Shown here in pieces: positions 5,317 to 40,289 of a DNA stretch of 64,000 nucleotides. Each line of letters begins with the position of its first letter. The first letter of the stretch is position 1. The notes under the pieces are model-generated. The model worked only from the letters and a program-made list of their open reading frames with translations, was not told where the DNA came from and did no database searches. The translations under genes and the position numbers were made by a program. Source of the stretch: Marsupella aquatica (taxonomy: Eukaryota > Plantae > Marchantiophyta); assembly GCA_973895155.1 (NCBI GenBank), contig OZ316898.1, forward strand, positions 18,487,292-18,551,291, written 5' to 3'.

Positions 5317-5629
5317 AGGGCGTCTCAAACTTAAGCATTTGGAATTCCGAATGGCACCCGGGATTTCACAGTCGCGGGCCGCCCGGATCAGGTGGTCGGC
5401 CCACCGATTTGGTGACCGTAAAGTTTTTCCCGGGTTTTTTTTATTACAATTTTTCTTTGGAAAAACCCAGGTCTAACCCGTGCCGGGACTCCTTTGAGGT
5501 GCGAGGTAAAGTTCAGACCCCCAGTTTTTTGGGACCCGATTTTGGGTACCGGTGTTCAATATCGGGCGGCGATTAGAGACATCCGGGTGACCGGAAGGAA
5601 TCCTAGAACGTGCAGGGTTGAGACGCCCT
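5317..5629. mobile_element. 313-bp MITE of the AGGGCGTCTCAA (Pangu-like PHIS) family
   Basis: AAT(5314-5316)+agggcgtctcaa ... ttgagacgccct+AAT(5630-5632). Termini and TSD match the element at 12130-21585. Confidence 0.9.
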
Positions 5630-9058: not shown

Positions 9059-9364
9059 CCCGGGGTCCTCACTTTTTTTCTTCCGACCCATCACGCACAA
9101 ATAAGTATAGGGTTTTTTTATTGGGTTTAGTGAAATATTTTTAAATTTTTTTTGAACAACATTAGGGTTATTTTAATCCAATTTTTGAGAATTATAAGAA
9201 TCATAGGGTTTTTTTGAAATCAAATATGAGAATATTCTTGGAATATTCTATTAAGTTAGGGATAAAAAATTTTCGAAAAACTTTATTGACTTAACTTTTA
9301 GGGTGTTTATTCCCCCAAAACTTTGAGCGTGATATGGGACACCCCTTGGATTGAGGCCCCCGAG
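9059..9364. mobile_element. 306-bp MITE with 8-bp TSD (hAT-like TSD length)
   Basis: TSD actctcag at 9051-9058 and 9365-9372. TIRs cccggggtcctca / tgaggcccccgag. A close inverted copy lies at 41609-41918. Confidence 0.9.
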
Positions 9365-9507
9365 ACTCTCAGACAGACATTGGATTGTTTGGAGGGGCTT
9401 CTGGTGGGTTCCATTTGCATTATGTGGGAGTGGGGGCCTGACAGTTCCACTCCCAATTTAGGAAACTGGGTTCCATGGTGGACAAGCTCTATACCTGTGC
9501 GTTGCAC

Positions 9508-10035
9508 AAAAGATGTCATGACGCCCAAGATGTCGTTAAGAGAAAAGATGTCTGTGACGCCCAAGATGCCATTAAGAGAAAAGATGTCATGTCACCCAAG
9601 ATGTTGTTAAGAGAAAAGATGTCATCTCGTGATGTTTTTGAGACAAAAGATGTCACTACGCCCAAGATGTCTTTAAGAGAAAAGATGTTATTAAGTGTAA
9701 AGTTGTTGCTAAGTACAAAATGATCCATATTAAGTAAACTGATGTTGTTAGTCATCTATGTTGTCGTCTCCGTTGCACAAAAGATGATGTTGCATAAATA
9801 TGTCATTGCATTTACAATCTTGTTCAATAAAAGATATCATTAAGTAAAATATGTGGTTGCTCGAAAGATGTTGTTTACTAAAAGACATAGTTCGGCAAAA
9901 GACGTCAATGCTTAATAGATGACGTTGTGCTAAACATGTAGTTGGAAAATATCATGGTGCGAAACATATCTTTGTTAGAATTTAGATCTCATGATTGCCT
10001 AAAAACAAATTGTCGAGTGAAAGATGTCATGACAC
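9508..10035 (+). repeat. Minisatellite, ~35-36-bp unit made of ~18-bp AAGATGTC subunits, decaying 3'-ward
   Basis: aaagatgtc.tgacgcccaagatg...ttaagaga repeats clearly over 9508-9695, then degenerate aagatgt-containing units continue to ~10035. Confidence 0.8.
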
Positions 10036-12565
10036 AAAGAGAGGCGACAACCACCACCAAAGTACAACAAAATGAGAATAATTTTTAAAATTGTTTTTGT
10101 ACTTGATATCTTTTAAAACCTTCCTTCTTTTTTCACTATTTTTCTTGTCTTGTCTTTGTCTTGTTGATTAGATTGTGCACTATTTTCTTGATTATGTAAA
10201 ATATTTGTCATTAAACTCCTCTCATGATGTCACCATGCAACACTTCCTTTGCATGGATGATATGGGATGGGGCATAGTATGGCATTGATGGTAGAGGGAG
10301 GAGCAATTTGTATGCATGATTGGCATGGATGGTAAAGGGGAAGGCTTTGTACTTTTCTTGCTTTTGGAAAAACATGTTTACACAAAACATAATTATTTTC
10401 TCTTATTCCTTTTCCTTTTACAGTTCCCTTTCACTCTACAAACTGTGTATTATAGGAGTTAATATGCACTTCCATAGTGCCATTTCAATTTGTACAATAA
10501 ATAAATAACTATACTAAGATTAGGCCTACTAGCAACATCCTTAAACCTTGAAAGAATTTTGTCATTCAGCAACACTGCCTTTTCACTGTGTACATTGTTT
10601 TTCAAAATGAAATGTGGAAACCCGGAAGATAATATTCAGACTTCAAGTTTTTGTCCTGAAATAAGAAATCATTAATGGTTTGTGCAAGTCCTGCTGGATT
10701 TGGCACTAAGGTAGGTCCATTTGTGGCAATCCCAAGAAAACTGAAATCCAAATTTGAACTTTAGTAGTGTGTGGAAAAATCAAGGTGATCCCCTCATTGT
10801 CAGATAATAGAAGACCCAGGTATTGCTAACTATGTGGGAGAAGGGACCTGACACTCCCACTCATAATGGTTGGAGCTTGCAACCCAGGTCCCGATTGAAC
10901 CAGGTAACTACTGATTCCATGGCGGAGCTGGGTTCTTGTTGGTAGTCCATTTTTGGTTCATCTCACCTTCCACTCGGGAAACTATATAGCAGCTTTTAAT
11001 TATGTTATCACTAAAGATATTGTAATTTACAATAGTATCATTATGTTGATTGTATTCACAAATTTATGACAGTTTTCGTGAACCAGAAGCCCAGATCAAC
11101 ACAGACGTTTGTCGGGTGACCTGGATGGACACAGGGTGCGTGACAGTGTAAAACCAAACACCAATGACATTGGAAATGGATTACGTCTGTCATTACCATA
11201 AGCTGTCCCTGGTTTAGACTCCATAATTTTCCTTCCATTGTTTTTAATTCCATCACCCAACAAGCATGCATGGCTGCTGCCAAGAACGCCTCATGATCGC
11301 ATTGGTTGTGGATAATGGCTACGGGAAGCAGCAACACAGGATTTGGCCCAAGTAATTTGCCCTAGTCTGCATTGAGGTCCGCATCAAGTTCCGCATCCTC
11401 CATTGTTACCACACTCACCACATGAAACAATGTTGCATTCAATTTGTTCTCATCCCAGGCTTTCAGAGATCATCACATACACTGGTTGCAACGTTAATAA
11501 AGTTTTGGCTGCGAGTTTTGGATACATTGTGAGCTGCAAATGTGAGAACTGAAAGACTGCTCCTGGGAACATTGGCTGTAAAATCTGATGTTGTGCATGG
11601 ATGATTATCAATACACTGTGTTTTGATAGCCACAGACCTTCGCTTCCCTGATGATTACCAGTGTCACGTCCAATTTAAAGGATCTTTAATTCTATGATTT
11701 CTCAGAACACGGATTGCTGAAAGAATTGACTCACTCGCTGCACTGTGGGGATAATCAATCTGCAAGAAGCGAGCAAAAGCAAAAATTATAATTCCCCGAG
11801 TGAGAACTGAGTTTTGTGCACCCCCTTTATCAACCTTTCAAGCAGCTGGCAAAAATATGCAAAGATTGAGAGAAACAAAGAAAGACTGTAGAGCTTTTCC
11901 TTCCTCAAATTTGCACCCCATTTGAACTGAGAAATAATGAACTCGTCGTGAGTCAGCCAGTTGAATTGCATGTAAGGAAAGAGAGACTGCAAAATGAATA
12001 ATTGAATCAAAGTTTGCAAGAGGTCATCAAAGCAAAAGAATAAAATGTCTACAAACAATAAGGAAGTCAATTTAGTTGAGTATCTTGCGTGGAGCACAAT
12101 TCTTCCCAGTGATCTGAAATCAAAGCAATAGGGCGTCTCAAAGCCAAGCCATAATGAAAATTTAAGCCCACGGGAGGTTCTGACGGGACTTAGAAAAAAG
12201 AGGGGGTAAGGTTTGACCCGCCCCGTATGGCAGCCATTACGGCCTAAGTCACGTTTCAATTATCAGCACCATTTCCTCTCCCGCTTGGAATGTCCCTGCC
12301 CGAACGAGCCATATGCTGCCACGTCGGTTGGATAGCGTAGGTCCTCCATTCCAAAGTTGCAGAGGTTTAAATTTTTAGGAGCACCATTGACGTGTAATGC
12401 GTCGATTGCACTTTAATCACCGACAACGTACTCGTCGTATGCACTTCAAAATCTGGATTTCCGGATTGCCGGATTTCAATTTTCCCGAATGTGCGGATTC
12501 GCGCACTTCTTTCAAATTTTGGCATCGTCGACATCTCCCTCTATCACAACACAAATTGCTAAGTC

Positions 12566-14196
12566 ATGGACAATGCCTCGTCTGAATCTATGTATATATG
12601 TGATAGAGCTTTTGACATTTTAGTTCAAGCACGAACTGCCCTTCGTCACGAGGTCGAGCACAAGGTTGCTGATTACTTGCAGTCCATTCTTGACAAGCCC
12701 ACATCTTCTTCTGTGGGCTCACACTCTTTCAGCACAATGTCTAGCACAGGGAGCCAGGGTTTTGTGAGAGAAGGTTTTGGGAGGAGCAAAGGCTCTGCCT
12801 TCCAGCCACCACGAGCAACTGTTGCCAACGAACAGTACCGAGTTCCTACTGAGAAGTTTCGCTTGAAGGATGAAGACTATGATCTCATAGTCTCATACCT
12901 TGAGATCCCTGAGAACTTTGCAGCAGTGCACGGATCAGGTAGGAGAACAAAGATTGGGCAGAAATACCAGTCTAAGGCCACTGTCATGAAGTCCATGTTG
13001 GCTGCACTCATTCATCATGGTTTCCCCAAGGAAATCACTGCACCAAATCTGACGAAGCGATTTCAACGATACAAATTGAGATACAAGCAAGCTCTTGAAG
13101 TGAAGAATGGCACTGGAGCAGGGCTGATAGAGGAAGAGTCATTGGCTGGGATGACCTTGGAGGACAAATTCAACCGCCTCTGCCCTCATTTTGAGTGAAT
13201 GGATGCTCTCTTTGGAGCTAGACCCAATGTTAACCCACCAATTGTTGGTGATGTTGGAGTTGAAAATCTTGACTTTATCATGACTGAAGATGACTCTGGG
13301 GATGTGGAGATTGTCGATGATTGGGAGAACTCATGCCCAAATATTGCACAACAACACAGTCCAACCATAATCCTTGATGGTACAAGCTCTTCCATTCCTT
13401 TTTTGTTAATTATATTTTCGGATTCAGGATTCTGTGTTCACTGTAAAGTGCCTAACAAATAAATTAATCTTCATCTTCTTCCTGGGGTGACACAGATACG
13501 CCTGCACCATCGCCAGCTCAATCTGTTCACACATCAACACCAGCAGTGCATCACATTCCTACACCTTCAACTTTAGGACGAGCACCCCCAGTCGATGATG
13601 GCTTCTGGAAGGAAATGGAGGACATCGCCAGGGAAAACATTGGGGCTCATGTCACCAATTGCCTGTGTCAAGTTTGTATCAGGTTTGCAGGCATGAACAC
13701 TAGGGAAAACATGCCCCGCCCCACAGACAATGCTACTTCAGGACCATGAACTGCCTCACCAATTCCTCCCACAGTCCTAGCCCCCTCGAAGAAGGGGCCC
13801 AAGACTCCCGCGCAAGCGGCAAAGGAGGCCCATAAGGAATTCAAGCCTTCCTTTTCAGCAATATACGCTGAGAGAATCAACCTCAAAGCTGATTATCAAA
13901 AAGATTTGATCATAAGTCGTGACAAGTGGAAGACCCAAGACATTGTTGAGCGACGTGAAGCCAGAACCCAAGCTCAGGCTGAGGCTTCAGCCAAGCACCG
14001 GTTGGACAGGAAGCATCAACTGGCCTTAGAAGCCTTTTGTGCTGAGAACGCACTGAAGAAAGTCAAAGCAGAGCAAGAACATGCAGAGAAGCTGGATAAA
14101 GCAAATAGGCGAACTACATTGTTGATCACTATGTTAGGGTCCAACAAGTCTTCCGATGAGATCAAGGATCTTCTTCAGCTTCTAGATAAAGAGTAG
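12566..14196 (+). pseudogene. Myb/SANT-like DNA-binding partner of the Harbinger transposase (2 exons, two premature stops)
   Basis: Exons 12566-13379 and 13496-14196 (GT-AG intron with a cctaac branch point) give 505 codons. In-frame TGA at 13196 and 13747 (probably from CGA). Motifs TGAGL...LEDKFNRLCPHFE(R)MDALFGARPNVNPP and a C-terminal charged coiled-coil are typical of fungal/oomycete-type Harbinger partner proteins. Confidence 0.8.
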
Positions 14197-14749
14197 ATTG
14201 AACTATACTACATATTTGTAGAACCAGATCTGAATTTAGTAATGTACGTACTGCACAATGTACATCTTTTATTTTCAAACTCTGCATTCGTGTACAAAAC
14301 AATGTCTCTCAACATCCTTCCTATGCTTTGACATTGTATGCCCGCACACCTGTATAAACAAACCTGGCAAACTACTACCAAAAAATAATCTTATTGCTGT
14401 GAAACCAATTGTGAGAAACTTCCGGAATGCCGGAAATTCAGAATTCCGGTAAGCAAAATGGACTATGGATTGACGTCTAAATCGGTACTTGGTGTTCAAC
14501 TATTCAGCACTTTATATGATCCTAACGTTCTCAACCACTTCTGGTAATCTCAGTCCCTATACGAATGGCCTCAAGAATTTCTTCTCTTTTACCCTCATTA
14601 TGAAAAGTTAAGGGCGAGGAATTAAACTATAGCTTATAGCCAAGCAAAGGGAGTTGCTTGTTAATGAACAGTCTGTGTACCCTAGTAGCTTCACGATAAA
14701 CTGTGAGGAAGTCTAAATTGTTGCAGGTATCATACTCCACAGTAGGAAA

Positions 14750-17352
14750 TCACTCCCGGAATCTTTCCTCACTTGACATGATATCCACATAAGGTTCAAA
14801 GTCCACCATCAGTCTATCATAATATGTCCTGTACTCCAGCAATGTAGGAGTAGAAATGTTATCCCACATTCTCTGCAAATCCTTTGTCTTCATGTAATTG
14901 TAAATAGCAATAGCTGGTGTCTTAGGATGGAATGTAATTGGATTCCCACCTTCAGGCCTCTCTGATTGCTCTAGAAAATCCAGCATGAAGAGCAAACAGT
15001 ACGCTGGTAGATTGCCACACTCAGCAATCAGCATTTCACTGTCAAACACTTCAAGATCACCGTACATTACCATCATCGACAGTATCTCACGAAAATACTC
15101 CGTAACGTGCCACATATTCAAAGAATCATGCTTTTGGATGAGGCTAGACCGGAAGCACCTAACTTGAATATGTACAAGGCTTCCCTTCTCTTGGCAAAAT
15201 AATAATGCCAGAACTCCTGCATAGGACTTTGGTATTGTTGAATAATTGAGCATGCCTCTACATATCTTGCTACTTCTTCTGCTGGTGTGGGTGCTCAAGG
15301 CAGGTGAATTGATAGACACGATGTGTGTCTGAGCCTCCGAATCTCTTATCCAGTAACTGTTGCCACCATATTTGCTTTTATTAATGGGAACAGTACAATT
15401 CTCACAGCCCTCTATGCAAATGTAATTGTCAGGGATGTGCTTATGAAGAAATGTCGTCTTCTCTCCTTCTGAGTCATCTTTGAGAAGACTCACCTCAGCT
15501 TCAGCTCCAGCCTCAGGGACATCCTCAGACACAAGGTCAAGGACATGCTTAGGGACATCCTGGGACATGCTCATCTAGAGCATCATCTTCATAAACATGT
15601 TCTTTTGTTGGTGTAGCATTGGGAAGACTCCCTTGTGGAACAACGTGAGAGATTATGTCTACCTCTACCTCTACCTCTGCCCATGCGTCATGTAGTGCTG
15701 TTAATTGTGGACGTGCCTCATGGACATCATTATTGTCCATGCATTGGTCCGGGAGAAATTGTGTGTCTACCTGTACCTGGACCTCTGCAACAGCCTCCGC
15801 GTCTGCAGTTGCCTCATGCACTGATGGAAACTCTGCCCCTCCAAGGTCATGGACAGGATTGTCCGTGCATTGCTCAGCCACATCACTATCTTGCACTGCC
15901 TCCACAATAATAGGACTAAGTTCTCTTATGGTAAAGCTGGGACCCGACTCACCATTATTGTCAATTTCCGCATCTCCAAGTACTGTGGCATGTATTTTAT
16001 TTGCATCCACCAGCTTCTGTACTTCATTCACTATTTCCTGAGGACAACAACCCAACATAACAACCAGGTCACTAATGATCTTCTTGTTGCCTTCTGCATC
16101 TACTGAACTTGGCGATTGTGAAGCAGACTGTACACTGGAAGTTGTTTCTGTGACATTAGTGGGATTTGGCCGGCGCCTTTTCCTTTTTATGCTCATGTCT
16201 GCCAACAGCTTCAAATTGTCATTCTCTGCCTCCAATATTGTAACTCTATCTCTTAAACTCTCCGCATCAGTGAATGGCCTTTGCATAGGAGAGTCCACTA
16301 GACCTGTTTTGTCAGGAATGGCATCTTCCATTTCCTATACTGGAACATCTACGTACTGGGGAACTTCGCCAGGAATGGCATCTTCCATTTCCTGTACTGG
16401 AATATCTATGTATTGGGGAACTTCGCCAGGAATGGCATCTTCCATCTCCTGTACTAGGGGACTTTGTCAGGAATGGCATCTTCCATTTCCTATATCAGAA
16501 CATCTGTGTACTGGGGGACTTCGTCAGAATTGGCTTCTGCCTGTAAATCATGATGTGGTTCATCACCTGTTTCGTCTTCCGACCCCTCATGACCGTGAGT
16601 GTCATCCTCTGAATCCAAATTAGAGTCACATATACCAGTAATGTCAAGGTTTGCAAATATACTTTGTCGTTCCTATTTTTCTTCTGGTAGGAGACAAGAC
16701 CCATGTACCAATACAATTGGCCTACATACACCTGGAGATAAGTAACATTGTTTTTGCCTAACTGTGCCAGCTGCGACCTTATTACTGCAGCCAAAATTAA
16801 TCCCCAATTAGTTTTCCTCTGTTGTGTCCATGATGCTACAATGGTGTTGGCCAAGCTACACATAACTTGGCTCGGCCTCATTGGATGGAAAATTGGAATG
16901 AGAAAGCGAAGCAGCATGTCAAGGTCACCGTTGTTGCAGTCACTGATCTTCCACCCATCCTTGGTCCCAGGTGGGACAGAGAAATACGCCTCAGAGCAAT
17001 GTTGGTGGCGCCTGAACATCCCCTCCCCCTCGGTTGAGATGTGGAATGCGTCTCCAACAAACTCATTTGTCCACTCGTCAGTTTGGCCTCTTACTGTACC
17101 CTCAAACCTGTCAGCAATAATGCCGTCAATGATTTCTGCCAGTAGCAAAGGTGCTACGACACCCCAGGGAACCATAAGTAATCCTTCCAGTCCCATGACG
17201 CGCAGCATGCTCTGCATACGTTTAAGACGACCCTCCACGGCAGGGAATCGAGGGGAAACTTCTCTCAATACCAAATCGTGGTTGTTTTTTGGACTTCCCA
17301 TTACGCCTGCCAAGGGGTACAGGATATAGGAAGTGTACACTATGCGTGCCAC
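14750..17352 (-). pseudogene. Long cargo ORF (~860 codons) broken by frameshifts and stops: N-terminal bryophyte repeat-associated domain, 19-aa acidic repeats, coiled coil, globular C-terminal domain
   Basis: Three abutting minus-strand ORFs (16495-17352, 15549-16331, 14750-15574) join through frame shifts. The alternative frame reads PEEK*ERQSIFANLD...EVPQYTDVLI*EMEDAIPD, with TAG stops at apparent CAG positions. Confidence 0.65.
16312..16530 (-). repeat. Coding tandem repeat, 57-bp unit (EMEDAIPGEVPQYVDVPVQ) x ~4, one unit shortened
   Basis: caggaatggcatcttccat(t/c)tcct.ta recurs at ~16313, ~16370, ~16427 and ~16468. Confidence 0.85.
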
Positions 17353-18203
17353 AGAACATACGATGAATGAAATTTGCTACAACAATGGTTCATGGAGTCC
17401 AAAATCCGGAAATAAACCAGGCAAAACAAGGATCAATGATGAGCGATTCCTCCTTCACAATCAACACTTCAAATCCAACAGGCGGGAAGGATGCTATGCA
17501 CAATGTGTGTTGTTCCCAAAGTACAGATGTTTACGTTCTACGTACCCATTTCAAATTTCGTAATTCCGGAATTACAAAATTCCGGCATTCCGGAAAGTTG
17601 GCACTTTGGAATGTATGTTTGGTGAAGACAGGGATATGGAAGTTTGTAGTAGTTTCATATTATTGATGTTTGGAGTAGTTTCATACTATTATTATTTTTG
17701 GGACAATCTAGTGATGAAGGGGTGAAGCAGCATTTGGGGTTTCTTTGGTTTGCATCATAATTTTCCTCATTATGTGACCTATGTGGTACATGTTTGTTGG
17801 TCATGTACGTATCCATATTCTGAGGGAATTTTTGTCAAGTCCTTTTCATTGAGACATGCACATGTTGGGAAATATATCCTAACTTTATTTAAACACATAT
17901 GTACACAGTCATAAGTGCCCACATATTCACAGTCGTTGAGTTGAGCGCATGGTGCCATGAAGGGAATGTAAAAAATAAATATAATGGAATATGGTTCACA
18001 CTTACAATAACAGGACTTCTCCATTCACAGTTATTCCTCCAACATTATTATTTGGCCTGCATGCTACCTACAATTCGACGGGAATTCTATACTTCCAACT
18101 CCTTCTCTTGACCTTCCTAGTTTAAGCAGGGTCATTGTGCCCTGATACACTTTACCTATGACAACATAGACATTTTCAAGCCTTTTACAGCAGGTGCTAA
18201 TAA

Positions 18204-19688
18204 TTAAGTGACATTTTGAGTACTCCCGACATAGAGACATCCACCCGGTTCTTTATGGAACTGCAATGCCCATTGCATGATGTTGTTTTGTAAGGTAACA
18301 CTCTGTGGTTGGGGTCGACCATGTCGAGGTCGAGGGTCTACTACGAAATCCACACCTTCATCTTCTGAGTCAACATTGTCAACTGTAATCTCCTCATCCT
18401 CATCAGTCCAGAGGTAGTTCCTATTAATGACAAAGTTGTGCAACCGTGCACACATTACAATCCACCTCACTAGAAAAAAGTTGTATGCTTTTGATTTCAA
18501 TTGGACTCGCATTTCTCTGAGTGAGTACCACCGTGATTTCAAGACACCAATGCAATGCTCATTTGTTACCCTGCACTTGGCCACACACATGTTGAAGTCT
18601 TCACGGTCTGAGTTGCATTCTGCCCTTTTGTATGAGCAAACCAGGTGTGGCATGGACGCATACCCACTGTCTCCGAGAAGGTATTGACCACGGCCAAAGA
18701 GAATGCCATCATTTTGTCTGCGAAACAATGAGGACTTCTTGTAGCATTGCAGGTCTGAACAAGAACCAAGGATACCTGTCATAGCACTGAAATAATGTCA
18801 ATCCCAGCAATGCAAAACCATGTACTCATGTGTAAAAGTAAAGAGACATATGAAGAAGACATTGACCAGTGTAAAGGAAAAGGATTTTCCTTCTGTGGTC
18901 GCAAATAACTTGTGTATTTTCAAGTACCGACACTTTCTATCGTAGTAGCACTCTCCAGAATCCTTTGGCCGTTGAGAAAGTGGAATGAGAGTCCCATCAA
19001 TAAGGCCCACACACCCTGGGAAGCCTCTCTTTGAAAACTCCTCTGATATCTTTCGTCTTTCAGTACGATCAGGCCATCTCAAGTGGTCCTTCAATGTAGT
19101 TTCCATGGCAGTAAAACAACGAGTTGTGAAATTACAGAGAGATCCTGTACTAACTCCCCAAGTTGGAATGAGACGATTTAGACAAGCTCCATTGCCTTCA
19201 TGTCCCAAACGATCCAAGGTAACAGCTAGCTGCCATTCCACTGGAGCCTGTTGATATGGTGAATCATTGACAAAAACTGGATGATCCTCAATTAGGTGTA
19301 CTAAAGCAAAGAAAGAGGCTTTGTCCATTCTGGTCATCTGCCTGAATAATCTTGGTGGAAGTTTATCAAAAAACTGCAAGACAAACTCCCGAGATTTGAT
19401 GGTGATAGTCTTATCAACAAAATATCTGGTGTTTTCCATTACACTGTACAACTCAAGCAGGTCATCTGAATTGCCCTCAAGGTCATACATGTATGTCATA
19501 GCCTCGGAGTCAGATGATGAATAAAAATCTTCGTCAGACATACAGTCTGTGGGTGTTGTAGCATCACTCCAATCGCCTTCACTCCCGGTATCTGGTTCTT
19601 CTTCACTAGAACTGTGCAATACTATATTTAACATCAACATGTCTTTCACAAGCCGCATTGCTCTTTGGCGATTAAATATTCGAGGCAT
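18204..19688 (-). pseudogene. Harbinger/HARBI1-type DDE transposase (DDE_Tnp_4 family), 2 exons, one frameshift
   Basis: Motifs FRQMTRM...F..LV.LIEDHPVF, QLAVTLDRLGHEGNG, GFPGCVGLIDGT, YLLGDSGY and RVTNEHCIGVLKSRW carry the D-D-E triad. GT-AG intron at 18776-18866. A frameshift near 18920 restores NTQVICDHRRKILFLYTG. Confidence 0.92.
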
Positions 19689-19944
19689 ATTTCTCCTTCA
19701 TGCACAAAAAATGGACATGAGAAATTCAGACAATAGAGGTAAAATTTATAGTCCATACATGTCGTTGCATCTAAACATTTATTACATGTGAAAAAACTCA
19801 GTTGGGAGGTACAAAATTCCGGAATACTGAACCCTACACTGCTAGGGTACGTATGGTACTATGAATGAGAAATGCAATGTGGGCTGCTATAGAAAAACTG
19901 ATGATGCACGACGTGGTAATAATGTGGGAATTGCACCACACATC

Positions 19945-20583
19945 CTAGTCATCCAAATCCTGTAGGTTTAGCGCTCTAACAAGGTTGTCAATTGCTTCTC
20001 TGACTAGCTTAACATGAGTTTTCCCTTGGCTCATGGAGGGTTTCTGTTGGGTACGACCAGAAGACTTTGGAGTACCGTGCCCAGGATTGGGTCTATGTAG
20101 AGCTACATGGGGACGAGCATCCATAAAACATAGATGCTCAACCTTTATTTCATATTCAGCAACCGACAGCCAGACTTTCACTCTCGGACATGGTTGAGTG
20201 AGAGCCAGGAGGTATTGAAGTTGTTCAATCTCGCCCTGGCCTGCAAATTCTTGGGGAGTGCACCCCATGAATATTGAGGCATCTTCCCACATCATGGCAC
20301 TCAATGGTGCCGACCCAGCATGGACAGCATCACAGATGCGGATATGGAATCTATAACTCATGCTAGGTGGCAGATCGTGGTCACACTTTGGACCGCGCTC
20401 AAGGGACTTCTTGCATGTCCCCCCAGTCTTCAGCCTTCCAAGGCATGATGCATACACAAATTTTCGTGGATATGGATTCTCAGCTTCAAAATTCACTACC
20501 CAGGCTAGGCATGGATCAAAAGATACATTTTGGCCACTGGCCCTACTCTCCTCCACCTCAGCAAGGGATGTCCAAAGACCCAT
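19945..20583 (-). CDS. Cargo protein resembling the RPA1/RPA70 C-terminal Zn-ribbon OB-fold (ssDNA-binding) domain
   Basis: Open 212-aa frame from ATG 20583. FVYASC-x8-CKK-x7-CDH, YRFHIRICD and MMWEDASIFMGCTPQEF match the RPA70 DBD-C pattern Y.AC..C.KK / Y.L...I.D / T.F...AE.LLG.SA.EL. A likely 5' intron spans ~20587-20698. Confidence 0.65.
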   Translation of the reverse strand: MGLWTSLAEVEESRASGQNVSFDPCLAWVVNFEAENPYPRKFVYASCLGRLKTGGTCKKSLERGPKCDHDLPPSMSYRFHIRICDAVHAGSAPLSAMMWEDASIFMGCTPQEFAGQGEIEQLQYLLALTQPCPRVKVWLSVAEYEIKVEHLCFMDARPHVALHRPNPGHGTPKSSGRTQQKPSMSQGKTHVKLVREAIDNLVRALNLQDLDD

Positions 20584-20794
20584 CTTCTGCAATCTACATA
20601 TAGGAAGAACTGATTCAGGAAGTAATAACAGAGTTGGAATATACTGTCAATTAACTTTTCAAAGATTTCAAGCTGAACAACAACTGAAAGCACTCACCTC
20701 GCTGCTATTGTTGGAGTGAAGAAGCTCAAAACTTGTGATGACGATGCAAGTTTGAAACCTGGACGGAAGCCATATAAACACATTTGATATGACA

Positions 20795-21100
20795 ATGATG
20801 ATTTTTTCTGAATTCCGGAAAAATTGCATACAAACGCAATCTGTATCGTAACCAAACAACTATCGCAACCCAACAACTCACTTTGTTGCTCGAAAGTAGA
20901 AGAGGTATAGCTCAAGCTTCTGTAATCCACGACGTGATGTCGATGCGCATGCTAATCCAATAACACAAGCCATACGACGACAACGTCAAGACGATGATTT
21001 TTCCGGAATCCCGACAAATCTGCATACAAGCACATTCTCAAGCAGAACCAAACAACTGACCTGTTGCTCAAAATTAGAAGAGATTCAGCTCTAAGCAAGG
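20795..21100 (+). repeat. Two diverged direct repeats ~200 bp apart inside the transposon, each carrying TTCCGGAA
   Basis: gatgatttt..ttccggaa...tgcatacaa...aaccaaacaact...tgttgctc.aaa.tagaagag starts at ~20797 and again at ~20993. Confidence 0.7.
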
Positions 21101-22349
21101 CAAGCTGCGACCATACACAAGCCGACAACATTTGTCACGACTTCATCAATCGGAAACTGTGAAATTTGCATACACACGAAACTTGAATTGCATCTGCAAA
21201 GACTTACTTATTGCTTGAAAAGATGGTGCTATCGATCTCGCGATGTGCAGGTTGGACCTCGCGGATTGCAAGTTTAGGCTCGCGAAATGCAGGTGCGCCA
21301 AATTCACCACTTCTCTGTTGCGATCACCATGGCTCAGTTTTCTCCTCTCCGTCTTCGATAAGAAAGAGAGCGAGTTCAAAGTTTGGAACTGGCTACCTCA
21401 CGACATTGGCACTACAGTCCAACAAAGGCACACAGTATTTGCGCCAATGTTAACGGACCGTGTTTAAGGTAATGACTAAAGGCAAAAGCCCATGGGGTTT
21501 CCTTACGGGAACCGAAGATAGGCTCCCGTAACATGTGGCTTACGGGAGGGCCATAATGAGTTACGGCCTGGGTTTGAGACGCCCTAATGAGCGCAACAAC
21601 CAGTCCATTTTTTTGGAAGCAGCCAATTCCCGGTAAGACAGCCATTTTTTGGAAATCGCTGAAAAGTCAAGGATGTTGTGTTAGTCTGATGTTGAGTTAG
21701 TCTCTAAAGGCCTGTAGTGTAGGTGCACACGATTGGAGAAGCGCCAAGGGTGTTTGAACACATTAATGAGAACCCTAGACATGGTTTGCAACTCTGTCGA
21801 ATATATCCCTCTTTGCTTTGTCCCTCAATTTTGCCAAAGTGTTGGGCGGACTCTAGCCTTTGTCTGTAGGAAGGAAATCCTGCTTGATGGACATTCGACT
21901 GGAACAACCAACCAAAACCGGCTGTTCCCGGTAAGACACCACCCTACAGGTCACTTGAGAAGCGCAAATGAAAACAGTGTTATGTGAGCAAAATATCTCG
22001 TTCACGTGTGTCCATCCAGGTTGTGTTTGTCTTTCCGGGATGACAAATATCCTGGCTTTAAGTTCTTGTTTTCATACATGGTTTCACTTTATTACATTGG
22101 TGACACCATATACAAATTTGTGACATATTTATGAATTAAAAATATTGAGATAATGGTTAAAATCGAATATCTCTAGTGACAGGAAAACCGAACATTTAGA
22201 GTTGTCAAAATGCTCCCATGTATGTTAGCAACACAAATGACCCAATTTTACTTACATTGTCACACTGAATATTCCTAAGTAGTACATCGGTGTGTCATAA
22301 GGAATATTCCCAAATAATATGATTTATGTCTATTTATGGGAGCAGAAAA

Positions 22350-39288: not shown

Positions 39289-39435
39289 AGGGAGTCTCAA
39301 ACTTTGCGTTTCTGCCTCCCTTCATGGTCGTCGATGGATTCTCGGAAGAAAAGTGGCGGACACGAAAATCCATGTCCGCACACTCCTGACCCCTGACATT
39401 ATTTTTCCCCGGAACTCCAAGGTTTGAGATGCCCT
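39289..39435. mobile_element. 147-bp MITE of the AGGGCGTCTCAA (Pangu-like PHIS) family
   Basis: AAT(39286-39288)+agggagtctcaaac ... gtttgagatgccct+AAT(39436-39438). Confidence 0.85.
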
Positions 39436-40289
39436 AATAGAATCAGGAGTTTAGCAACACTTAGGGACCTAACAAATCAAGGATCTTCAGGTCAGCAGTC
39501 ATTGGTACCTTTAAGCTGGGTTGGCAAGACCTTGGGGCAGTTTGAGTGTTGTTTTATCAAAGCTAATGTATTGGCCACTCACCATCCTAAGAGCATCTCC
39601 AACAGTGTACTCTACTTCCTTACTGTAGACATTAAATAAGGTGTACTCCATTTCCTTACTGTAGACATGAAACCTAAGGAGTTGCCTTCTTTTTAGTATA
39701 CTTTATATACCAAGGATGATATGCCAAATTGCAAACCCAATGGTTATTCAGTTTTTACTAACTCGATCCTGACATAGGCAGAGTCGGATAGTAGTCATTA
39801 GATCTTGGATAACCCATGAAATGAATCCTACAGTCATATTCAATCAAATGATACTATTCATTTGATCTTGGGGAACCCAGGAATGACTCTTGCATTCAGT
39901 CGATGCTCTATACAGTTGCTCAAATAGAGTTCCGGAAACCCAGAAAACCCAGTAAGCTCACACGTGAAAAGCGTTCCAATAACCCATTGGGATTGCCTTT
40001 TTGCTCACCCTTACTGGGATTGATCGACATAGCTATACAGTGGACCCAATAACCCTTGGAGATCCTCCAAAGACAGTGTGGGGCTGAAAGAGAGTTTGGA
40101 ATCATTTTATGACCCCAATGCCCGCCCCAATGTTGTGTATAGCAAACTGCAACAAATAGTGCTTGAATACTTTGCTAGGAGAAGTTGTGGACCCACTCAA
40201 CCTCAAAGAGAGGATGTGACGAGGGGCATGTGTGTTCACTTTAATTGTAAAAGACTCAAAATAGGAATGAATCAAGTGGCCAGATGAAC

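Follow-up and report, generated by a model that had tools for sequence, protein, structure and literature searches.

The 64,000-nucleotide stretch of contig OZ316898.1 of Marsupella aquatica analysed in this study (hereafter the window) contains a 9.5-kb transposable element, located at positions 12130-21585 and bounded by terminal inverted repeats (TIRs), which fits the Pangu group of the PHIS superfamily. On balance, we consider it probable that this is a dead copy of such an element, and that one of its four gene units (gene B) is a captured and now decayed module of Gypsy origin, similar to the VANC proteins and to proteins of the plant mobile domain (PMD) type. The analysis shows the structure of the element, the lesions in its genes, the protein family of gene B, the match of a predicted fold, the Gypsy contexts of the homologs and the enrichment of a short palindrome. 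The capture and its direction, binding of the palindrome TTCCGGAA by the intact protein and an anti-silencing role are inferred.

Boundaries of the element and its placement in the Pangu group

Inverted-repeat detection paired positions 12126-12154 of the window with positions 21561-21589. The TIRs proper, as read from the sequence, are 25 nt long (left TIR, AGGGCGTCTCAAAGCCAAGCCATAA, 12130-12154, plus strand; right TIR, 21561-21585, minus strand), start with AGGGCG and are identical at 22 of 25 positions; the 21-nt terminus did not occur once in 100 shuffles. Direct reading of the sequence revealed an identical AAT on either side (12127-12129 and 21586-21588), which represents the target site duplication (TSD). 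Two gene-less elements resembling miniature inverted-repeat transposable elements (MITEs) are also present in the window, at 5317-5629 (313 bp) and 39289-39435 (147 bp). Both have the same 13-nt termini as the large element (AGGGCGTCTCAAA) and are flanked by AAT on both sides, and their interiors are unrelated to it.

The Pangu group was defined by a 5'-ANT-3' TSD and by TIRs of 11-40 bp with an AG or GG start (Han et al. 2015, PMC4482050). The TIRs described above agree with this definition in length and in their AG start, and the TSD is AAT in all three elements (the large element and the two MITEs), which is not the TWA (TAA or TTA) of PIF/Harbinger elements in the strict sense. A DDE transposase of the PHIS type is encoded as well, since an open reading frame (ORF) at 18204-18782 (minus strand) matches DDE_Tnp_4 (E 3.8e-16), and the motifs DGT, GDSGY and NE are present. 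Judged by its termini, TSD and DDE_Tnp_4 match, the element therefore fits the Pangu (ANT-TSD) group, and the fit is strengthened because the two MITEs share its termini and its AAT duplication. An earlier note on this DNA had proposed a Pangu-like, TIR-bounded PHIS element with both TIRs, an AAT TSD and a DDE transposase, and all of this was borne out.

A further point of resemblance is that the second ORF of Pangu elements is without a known motif (PMC4482050), as is the putative partner gene found here. However, the element is considerably longer than the average of the group (9.5 kb versus ~3.5 kb), and it has four gene units instead of two. The hosts named for the group (PMC4482050) include, among plant-type lineages, only algae and no land plants, whereas the host of the present element is liverwort-like.

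Gene B and its decay

Four gene-like units lie between the TIRs, three of them on one strand, and each has an upstream spacer with TTCCGGAA-type sites; the spacer motif shared by all four genes, to which the earlier note had drawn attention, is thus present in every case. The same note had described a four-gene element with cargo beyond the usual two genes. The number of units was correct, but the set is not intact, considering about eight lesions in gene B and a nonsense codon in gene A.

Instead of the single ORF of ~860 codons postulated earlier, gene B comprises three ORFs in three frames (16495-17352, 15549-16331 and 14750-15574), broken by frameshifts and premature stops, and spans positions 17301-14642 of the minus strand. 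Its N-terminal domain (16645-17301, minus strand), delimited with the aid of relatives, a structural model and structure searches, is an open frame with a predicted VANC21/PMD-like fold. This is followed by a variable region of 57-nt (19-aa) tandem repeats (16296-16541, minus strand), recognized by reading of the repeats and by homolog comparison, and by a broken C-terminal domain (14642-15288, minus strand), identified by tblastn with the relative P0003 and by comparison with a homologous locus of the liverwort Calypogeia fissa (L008).

The lesions are distributed along the whole gene. The frame changes near position 16620, after the N-terminal domain, where another relative (P0001) aligns straight across. 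Within the repeats there are three TAG stops (16492-16490, 16456-16454 and 16337-16335), at which other repeat units read CAG, and the frame is shifted by one unit truncated to 41 nt. Another frameshift lies in a 12-nt microsatellite near 15560-15590. In the C-terminal domain a frameshift is found near 15150-15163; in this frame the homology to P0003 starts at 15288, just past a stop, and, as revealed by tblastn, it continues for 36 codons beyond a TGA at 14750-14752. The three pieces of this domain occupy a single frame in L008. Introns were considered as the source of the breaks near 16620, at 15150-15163 and at the stop at 14750, and were rejected, since the homologs align without room for an intron. 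Because the homologs align through the breaks, these are lesions, and by this comparison gene B is a pseudogene with about eight stops or frameshifts.

The ratio of observed to expected CpG is 0.34-0.46 in the four gene bodies (within 12566-20592), compared with 0.60 window-wide. CpG-containing palindromes persist in the spacers, and three of the stops in gene B are CAG to TAG changes.

The gene B protein family and its genomic contexts

At E<=1e-3 the N-terminal ORF of gene B has 314 relatives (cluster representatives), and with the stricter limit of E<=1e-10 it has 119; many of the relatives are 600-800 aa long. One of these, P0003 (808 aa), matches both the N-terminal and the C-terminal domain, and the latter was also found in P0105 and in L008. 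The architecture of the family, as read from these sequences, appears to consist of a conserved N-terminal domain of ~200 aa, a variable acidic repeat region and, in some members, a C-terminal domain; tandem peptide repeats follow the conserved domain both in gene B and in the L008 homolog. The named members come from C. fissa. A word-indexed protein search with the C-terminal ORF returned nothing, and a metagenome scan with a four-sequence alignment yielded one short locus.

The proteins P0001 and P0003, which are two of the three best-scoring matches of gene B, originate, together with the only match of gene A (P0161, see below), from the Logan runs SRR18067302, SRR18067352 and SRR18067379. 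The neighbouring accession numbers of these runs perhaps indicate a single project, and the organism concerned probably holds a related family of elements.

The genomic contexts of gene B homologs were analysed in ten fetched loci (L001-L010). In five of them (L001, L003, L005, L007 and L009) the homolog is located directly downstream of a Gypsy-type pol gene, on the same strand, and in none of the ten is it accompanied by a DDE_Tnp_4 transposase. The usual position of the homologs behind Gypsy pol points to capture of gene B and speaks against the earlier suggestion that it was an invention of a PHIS lineage.

The locus L008 (CBCUJL010000001.1, 616-17158) differs from the five Gypsy loci. It contains an ORF similar to the RPA-like gene of the element (616-1398), and, 9 kb downstream, the gene B homolog, whose N-terminal and C-terminal domains lie at 9872-10798 and 16388-17017, respectively. 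The two genes share a strand, and their order is that found in the window. Large ORFs of unknown nature separate them, and a PHIS transposase was not recognizable in this locus.

The L001 locus is a metagenome contig (1-10852) carrying a Gypsy element that includes a homolog of gene B. Its first and last 123 nt are identical, and for this reason it is, as judged from its sequence, a circular or LTR-collapsed (long terminal repeat) assembly of the Gypsy element. It has a repeated motif of its own, of the GCGCTACA(A/G)CGCTA type, at three places.

Predicted fold of the N-terminal domain

A model of the N-terminal domain, built with a 34-sequence alignment, reached a predicted local distance difference test score (pLDDT) of 91 and a predicted TM-score (pTM) of 0.88. 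Foldseek gave no significant match, and among its rows that of the VANC21-DNA structure 9lnj had a TMq of 0.48, versus <=0.16 for all others. In a search independent of Foldseek, performed on 48,161 chains, the best match was 9lnk_A (Z 7.4, root-mean-square deviation 5.3 A, 203 of 219 residues), and the next reached a Z of only 2.3; a second structure comparison gave a Z of 7.3 for 9lnj_A. The match covers the whole domain and is the sole one in the PDB, and we therefore propose, with moderate confidence, that the N-terminal domain folds like the DNA-binding domain of VANC21 (DUF1985/PMD-like). The analogy to the VANC proteins, drawn in the earlier note, thus appears apt at the level of predicted structure.

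The DUF1985 domain of VANC has been linked by its structure to the plant mobile domain of MAIN/MAIL1 (PMD-C), and motif-directed association with chromatin has been described for both (PMC13547354; 10.1101/2024.09.27.615353; PMC5735166). Several features link gene B with VANC21 of the Arabidopsis element VANDAL21, a Mutator-like element (MULE). Both are accessory genes inside DNA transposons, in both the conserved domain precedes a variable region that contains tandem peptide repeats, and in both cases the non-coding DNA of the element holds arrays of a short motif (PMC5735166); moreover, the VANC21-DNA crystal structures are the only PDB entries matched by the predicted fold of the conserved domain of gene B. 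There are also differences. Gene B has no sequence-level similarity to VANC21 and no Pfam match to DUF1985 or PMD, its carrier is a PHIS transposon and not a MULE, its motif is the palindrome TTCCGGAA and not the oriented YAGTATTAY, and the host is liverwort-like, whereas VANC has been called dicot-specific (PMC13547354). In addition, the present copy of gene B is a pseudogene, and a VANC-like function of its intact form is putative.

The second system of interest are the PMD-A ORFs of angiosperm Ty3/Gypsy elements. These are likewise extra Gypsy ORFs with a PMD/VANC-type fold (predicted in the case of the gene B family), and five of the ten homolog loci have such an ORF after pol. However, the gene B family is without a Pfam PMD match, and PMD has been described as an angiosperm domain (PMC7156037), whereas the named relatives found here are from a liverwort.

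Arrays of a short palindrome

Six of the eight copies of TTCCGGAA in the window are located inside the element, all of them in spacers, and 17 of its 19 CCGGAA half-sites fall in its non-coding 32%. The only copies of the palindrome elsewhere in the window are at 39930 and 53665.

Motif scanning revealed a left subterminal block (TTCCGGATTGCCGGATTT..., 12459-12490, plus strand) ~100 nt upstream of gene A. Gene B is bracketed by a 39-nt inverted repeat, one arm of which is a motif cluster (TTCCGGAATGCCGGAAATTCAGAATTCCGG) just 3' of the gene (14411-14449), and upstream of the gene there is another cluster with five copies of AATTCCGG and two of TTCCGGAA (17553-17609). A AATTCCGGAA site (19815-19824), with the motif at 19817, separates the start of the transposase gene from the 3' end of the RPA-like gene, and the right subterminal region, upstream of the RPA-like gene (20797-21057), contains two 65-nt direct repeats with one TTCCGGAA each (at 20813 and 21001). 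A reading of the motif as a heat-shock element was tried and rejected, as six of nine TTCnnGAA sites have a CG centre and three-unit arrays are absent.

Two of the Gypsy loci are likewise enriched in this palindrome, with six copies in L007 (0.24 expected) and six in L009 (0.33 expected). In a screen of palindromic 8-mers covering the element and L001-L007, TTCCGGAA was the only strongly enriched one in the element and in L007, and none was strongly enriched in the other loci of this set. In L009 (C. fissa, 9146-10900), 14 CCGGAA half-sites and three exact copies of TTCCGGAA are concentrated in the 1-kb spacer between pol and the homolog, and one more exact copy follows the gene. The L008 locus has an array of another type, in which 13 copies of a ACTTCGGGGA-type motif immediately precede the homolog, and CCGGAATTCCGG immediately follows the homolog.

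The remaining genes of the element

The transposase gene (18204-19688, minus strand) was delimited by the Pfam match to DDE_Tnp_4, reading of the sequence and enumeration of possible introns. Between the first and the second catalytic D there is a TGA (18800-18798). An in-frame GT-AG intron of 72 nt (18847-18776) is possible and would excise this TGA, and the transposase may be intact if this intron is used. The obvious canonical GT-AG intron of 91 nt was rejected, since it shifts the frame. A metagenome scan with the transposase ORF found no relative.

Gene A (12566-14196, plus strand) encodes a putative partner protein and consists of at least three exon-like ORFs, as judged from the ORFs themselves and from the alignment with its only match, P0161 (298 aa, from a Logan run, 66% identical). 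The TGA at 13196-13198 is in frame. P0161 has R at this position and aligns for 61 codons beyond the stop, and by this alignment the TGA is a nonsense mutation. The Myb/SANT-like label given to this gene in the earlier note has a weak Atlas lead (only 0.79 to Myb_DNA-bind_4/5 clusters, with higher scores to unnamed fungal and plant clusters), and neither gene A nor P0161 has a Pfam match. The lack of a clear motif agrees with the motif-less second ORF reported for Pangu elements (PMC4482050).

The RPA70C-like gene (19945-20592, minus strand) is an open frame of 215 codons with a C..C..C.H pattern. Its nearest Atlas clusters are the OB domains of Rep_fac-A_C, POT1 and MEIOB, with scores of 0.86-0.91 (0.91 for Rep_fac-A_C), and the positions of the Cys and His residues are conserved in its C. 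fissa homolog (L008, 616-1398, E 2e-13). However, no Pfam or PDB sequence match was obtained even at E 10 (Rep_fac-A_C, PF08646, included), a word-indexed protein search with the ORF returned nothing, and a single-sequence AlphaFold model (pLDDT 33) was too poor to confirm an OB fold. Of the RPA-like OB fold proposed earlier, the Atlas leads and the conserved C..C..C.H pattern remain, and these are no more than leads. Plant Helitrons carry RPA70-like genes, and the candidate gene described here would similarly be a small OB-type, zinc-ribbon-like gene in a DNA transposon, although its carrier is a cut-and-paste element.

Origin and possible role of gene B

We propose that the core of the element consists of the DDE_Tnp_4 transposase, the partner protein (gene A) and the putative RPA70C-like zinc OB gene. 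Gene B would have been captured from a widespread, unnamed family of transposon accessory genes, whose usual home appears to be just after pol in liverwort Gypsy retrotransposons. The cassette would have arrived without retrotransposon ends (no LTRs, TIRs, TSDs, Helitron ends or long direct repeats were found around gene B in the window, and the check for such ends around the extra ORFs, suggested earlier, gave the same result), and it sits between TCCGGA/TTCCGGAA arrays like those flanking the homologs in two Gypsy elements. By analogy with VANC21 and PMD-C proteins, the intact gene B protein may bind arrays of short palindromes in the non-coding spacers of the element that encodes it, and, once bound, it may keep the promoters of the element active against silencing. 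In the present copy the decay of gene B probably preceded the last transposition or followed it closely. The nonsense codon of gene A would have arisen since then, and such a copy, being non-autonomous, could move only with help in trans.

Several observations weigh against this reading. The palindrome is not enriched in eight of the ten homolog loci, and the three proteins associated with it are only distantly related, which speaks against a simple correspondence of protein and site; it could therefore be a site for a host factor or for the partner protein. It also occurs upstream of the other three genes and, consequently, need not have arrived with the cassette. The fold match is middling (Z 7.4, deviation 5.3 A, identity 8%), a profile of the N-terminal domain compared with PDB sequences gave only low-complexity noise, in which VANC21 was not found, and among 123 family members there was no match to DUF1985 (PF09331), to PMD (PF10536) or to any other Pfam family, apart from two weak matches to PF20167 (Transposase_32). 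The comparison of lesions (7-8 in gene B versus 1-2 in the other 3.8 kb of coding DNA; binomial p 0.005-0.03) is rough, as lesions outside gene B are harder to see, and comparison with homologs is not feasible for breaks in the transposase gene or in the later gene A exons. Finally, no copy of the element with an intact gene B was seen in the window.

The most serious alternative, whose chances we place somewhat below even, is that the TTCCGGAA arrays are unrelated to gene B and serve as binding sites of the partner protein or the transposase, or of a transcription factor of the host on which many liverwort transposons draw. Subterminal protein-binding sites are usual in PIF/Harbinger elements, and the sites found here lie in both subterminal regions as well as upstream of every gene. 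CCGGAA half-sites are also present near the ends of the two gene-less MITEs, and both the distant relationship of the three palindrome-associated homologs and the lack of the palindrome in most homolog loci also speak for this view. On the other hand, TTCCGGAA is the top enriched palindrome in both the Pangu element and L007 and is enriched in L009 too, with a concentration of sites in the spacer that immediately precedes the homolog. With the tblastn queries used, the gene B homolog was the only protein shared by the Pangu element and these Gypsy loci.

The view of the earlier note, according to which this is an intact PHIS lineage whose four genes all function, family-wide, as accessories for single-stranded DNA binding and chromatin, appears unlikely. 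The TTCCGGAA-type spacers upstream of all four units, the common strand of three of them and the lack of foreign ends around the extra units are consistent with it, and so is L008, with its RPA-like gene 9 kb from the gene B homolog, on one strand and in the same order. Against it are the stops and frameshifts in gene B and the nonsense codon in gene A, the homologs that stand behind Gypsy pol and never, in the ten loci, beside a DDE transposase, and L008 itself, in which a PHIS transposase was not detectable. It is likewise improbable that gene B is debris of a Gypsy retrotransposon nested in the Pangu element, with its LTRs and pol since lost: such an origin would suit the usual place of the family directly after Gypsy pol and the far more advanced decay of gene B than of its neighbours, but tblastn with a related Gypsy pol found no match anywhere in the window, there are neither long direct repeats nor a duplication around the 39-nt inverted repeat, and gene B is complete from its N-terminal to its C-terminal domain and sits between motif clusters of the element's own type.

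Capture of a Gypsy-derived VANC/PMD-like module by a Pangu-group element, now dead, remains the reading that we favour. A more far-reaching version, which we put forward only tentatively, is that liverwort Gypsy and Pangu elements share a mobile module of protein plus target array, in which a VANC/PMD-like protein with sequence-specific DNA binding and, in the spacers, TTCCGGAA-type arrays of its palindromic target serve anti-silencing and can pass from one transposon class to another. If this were true, the PMD/VANC system would have arisen in transposons long before the angiosperms.

Conclusions

The copy analysed in this study is decayed and non-autonomous, and is not a working four-gene machine. 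Its significance lies in the family to which gene B belongs. Among the means by which transposons counter epigenetic silencing, the VANC proteins have been studied best, and they, together with the related PMD, have been described from angiosperms, with MULEs and Gypsy elements as carriers. The family described here has more than 300 members, corresponds to no Pfam family, has its named members in a liverwort and is predicted to possess the same rare fold; its carriers are Gypsy elements and a PHIS transposon, where arrays of one short palindrome accompany it. Should the VANC-like action proposed for it be true, anti-silencing modules would be older, and more mobile between transposon classes, than has been known.

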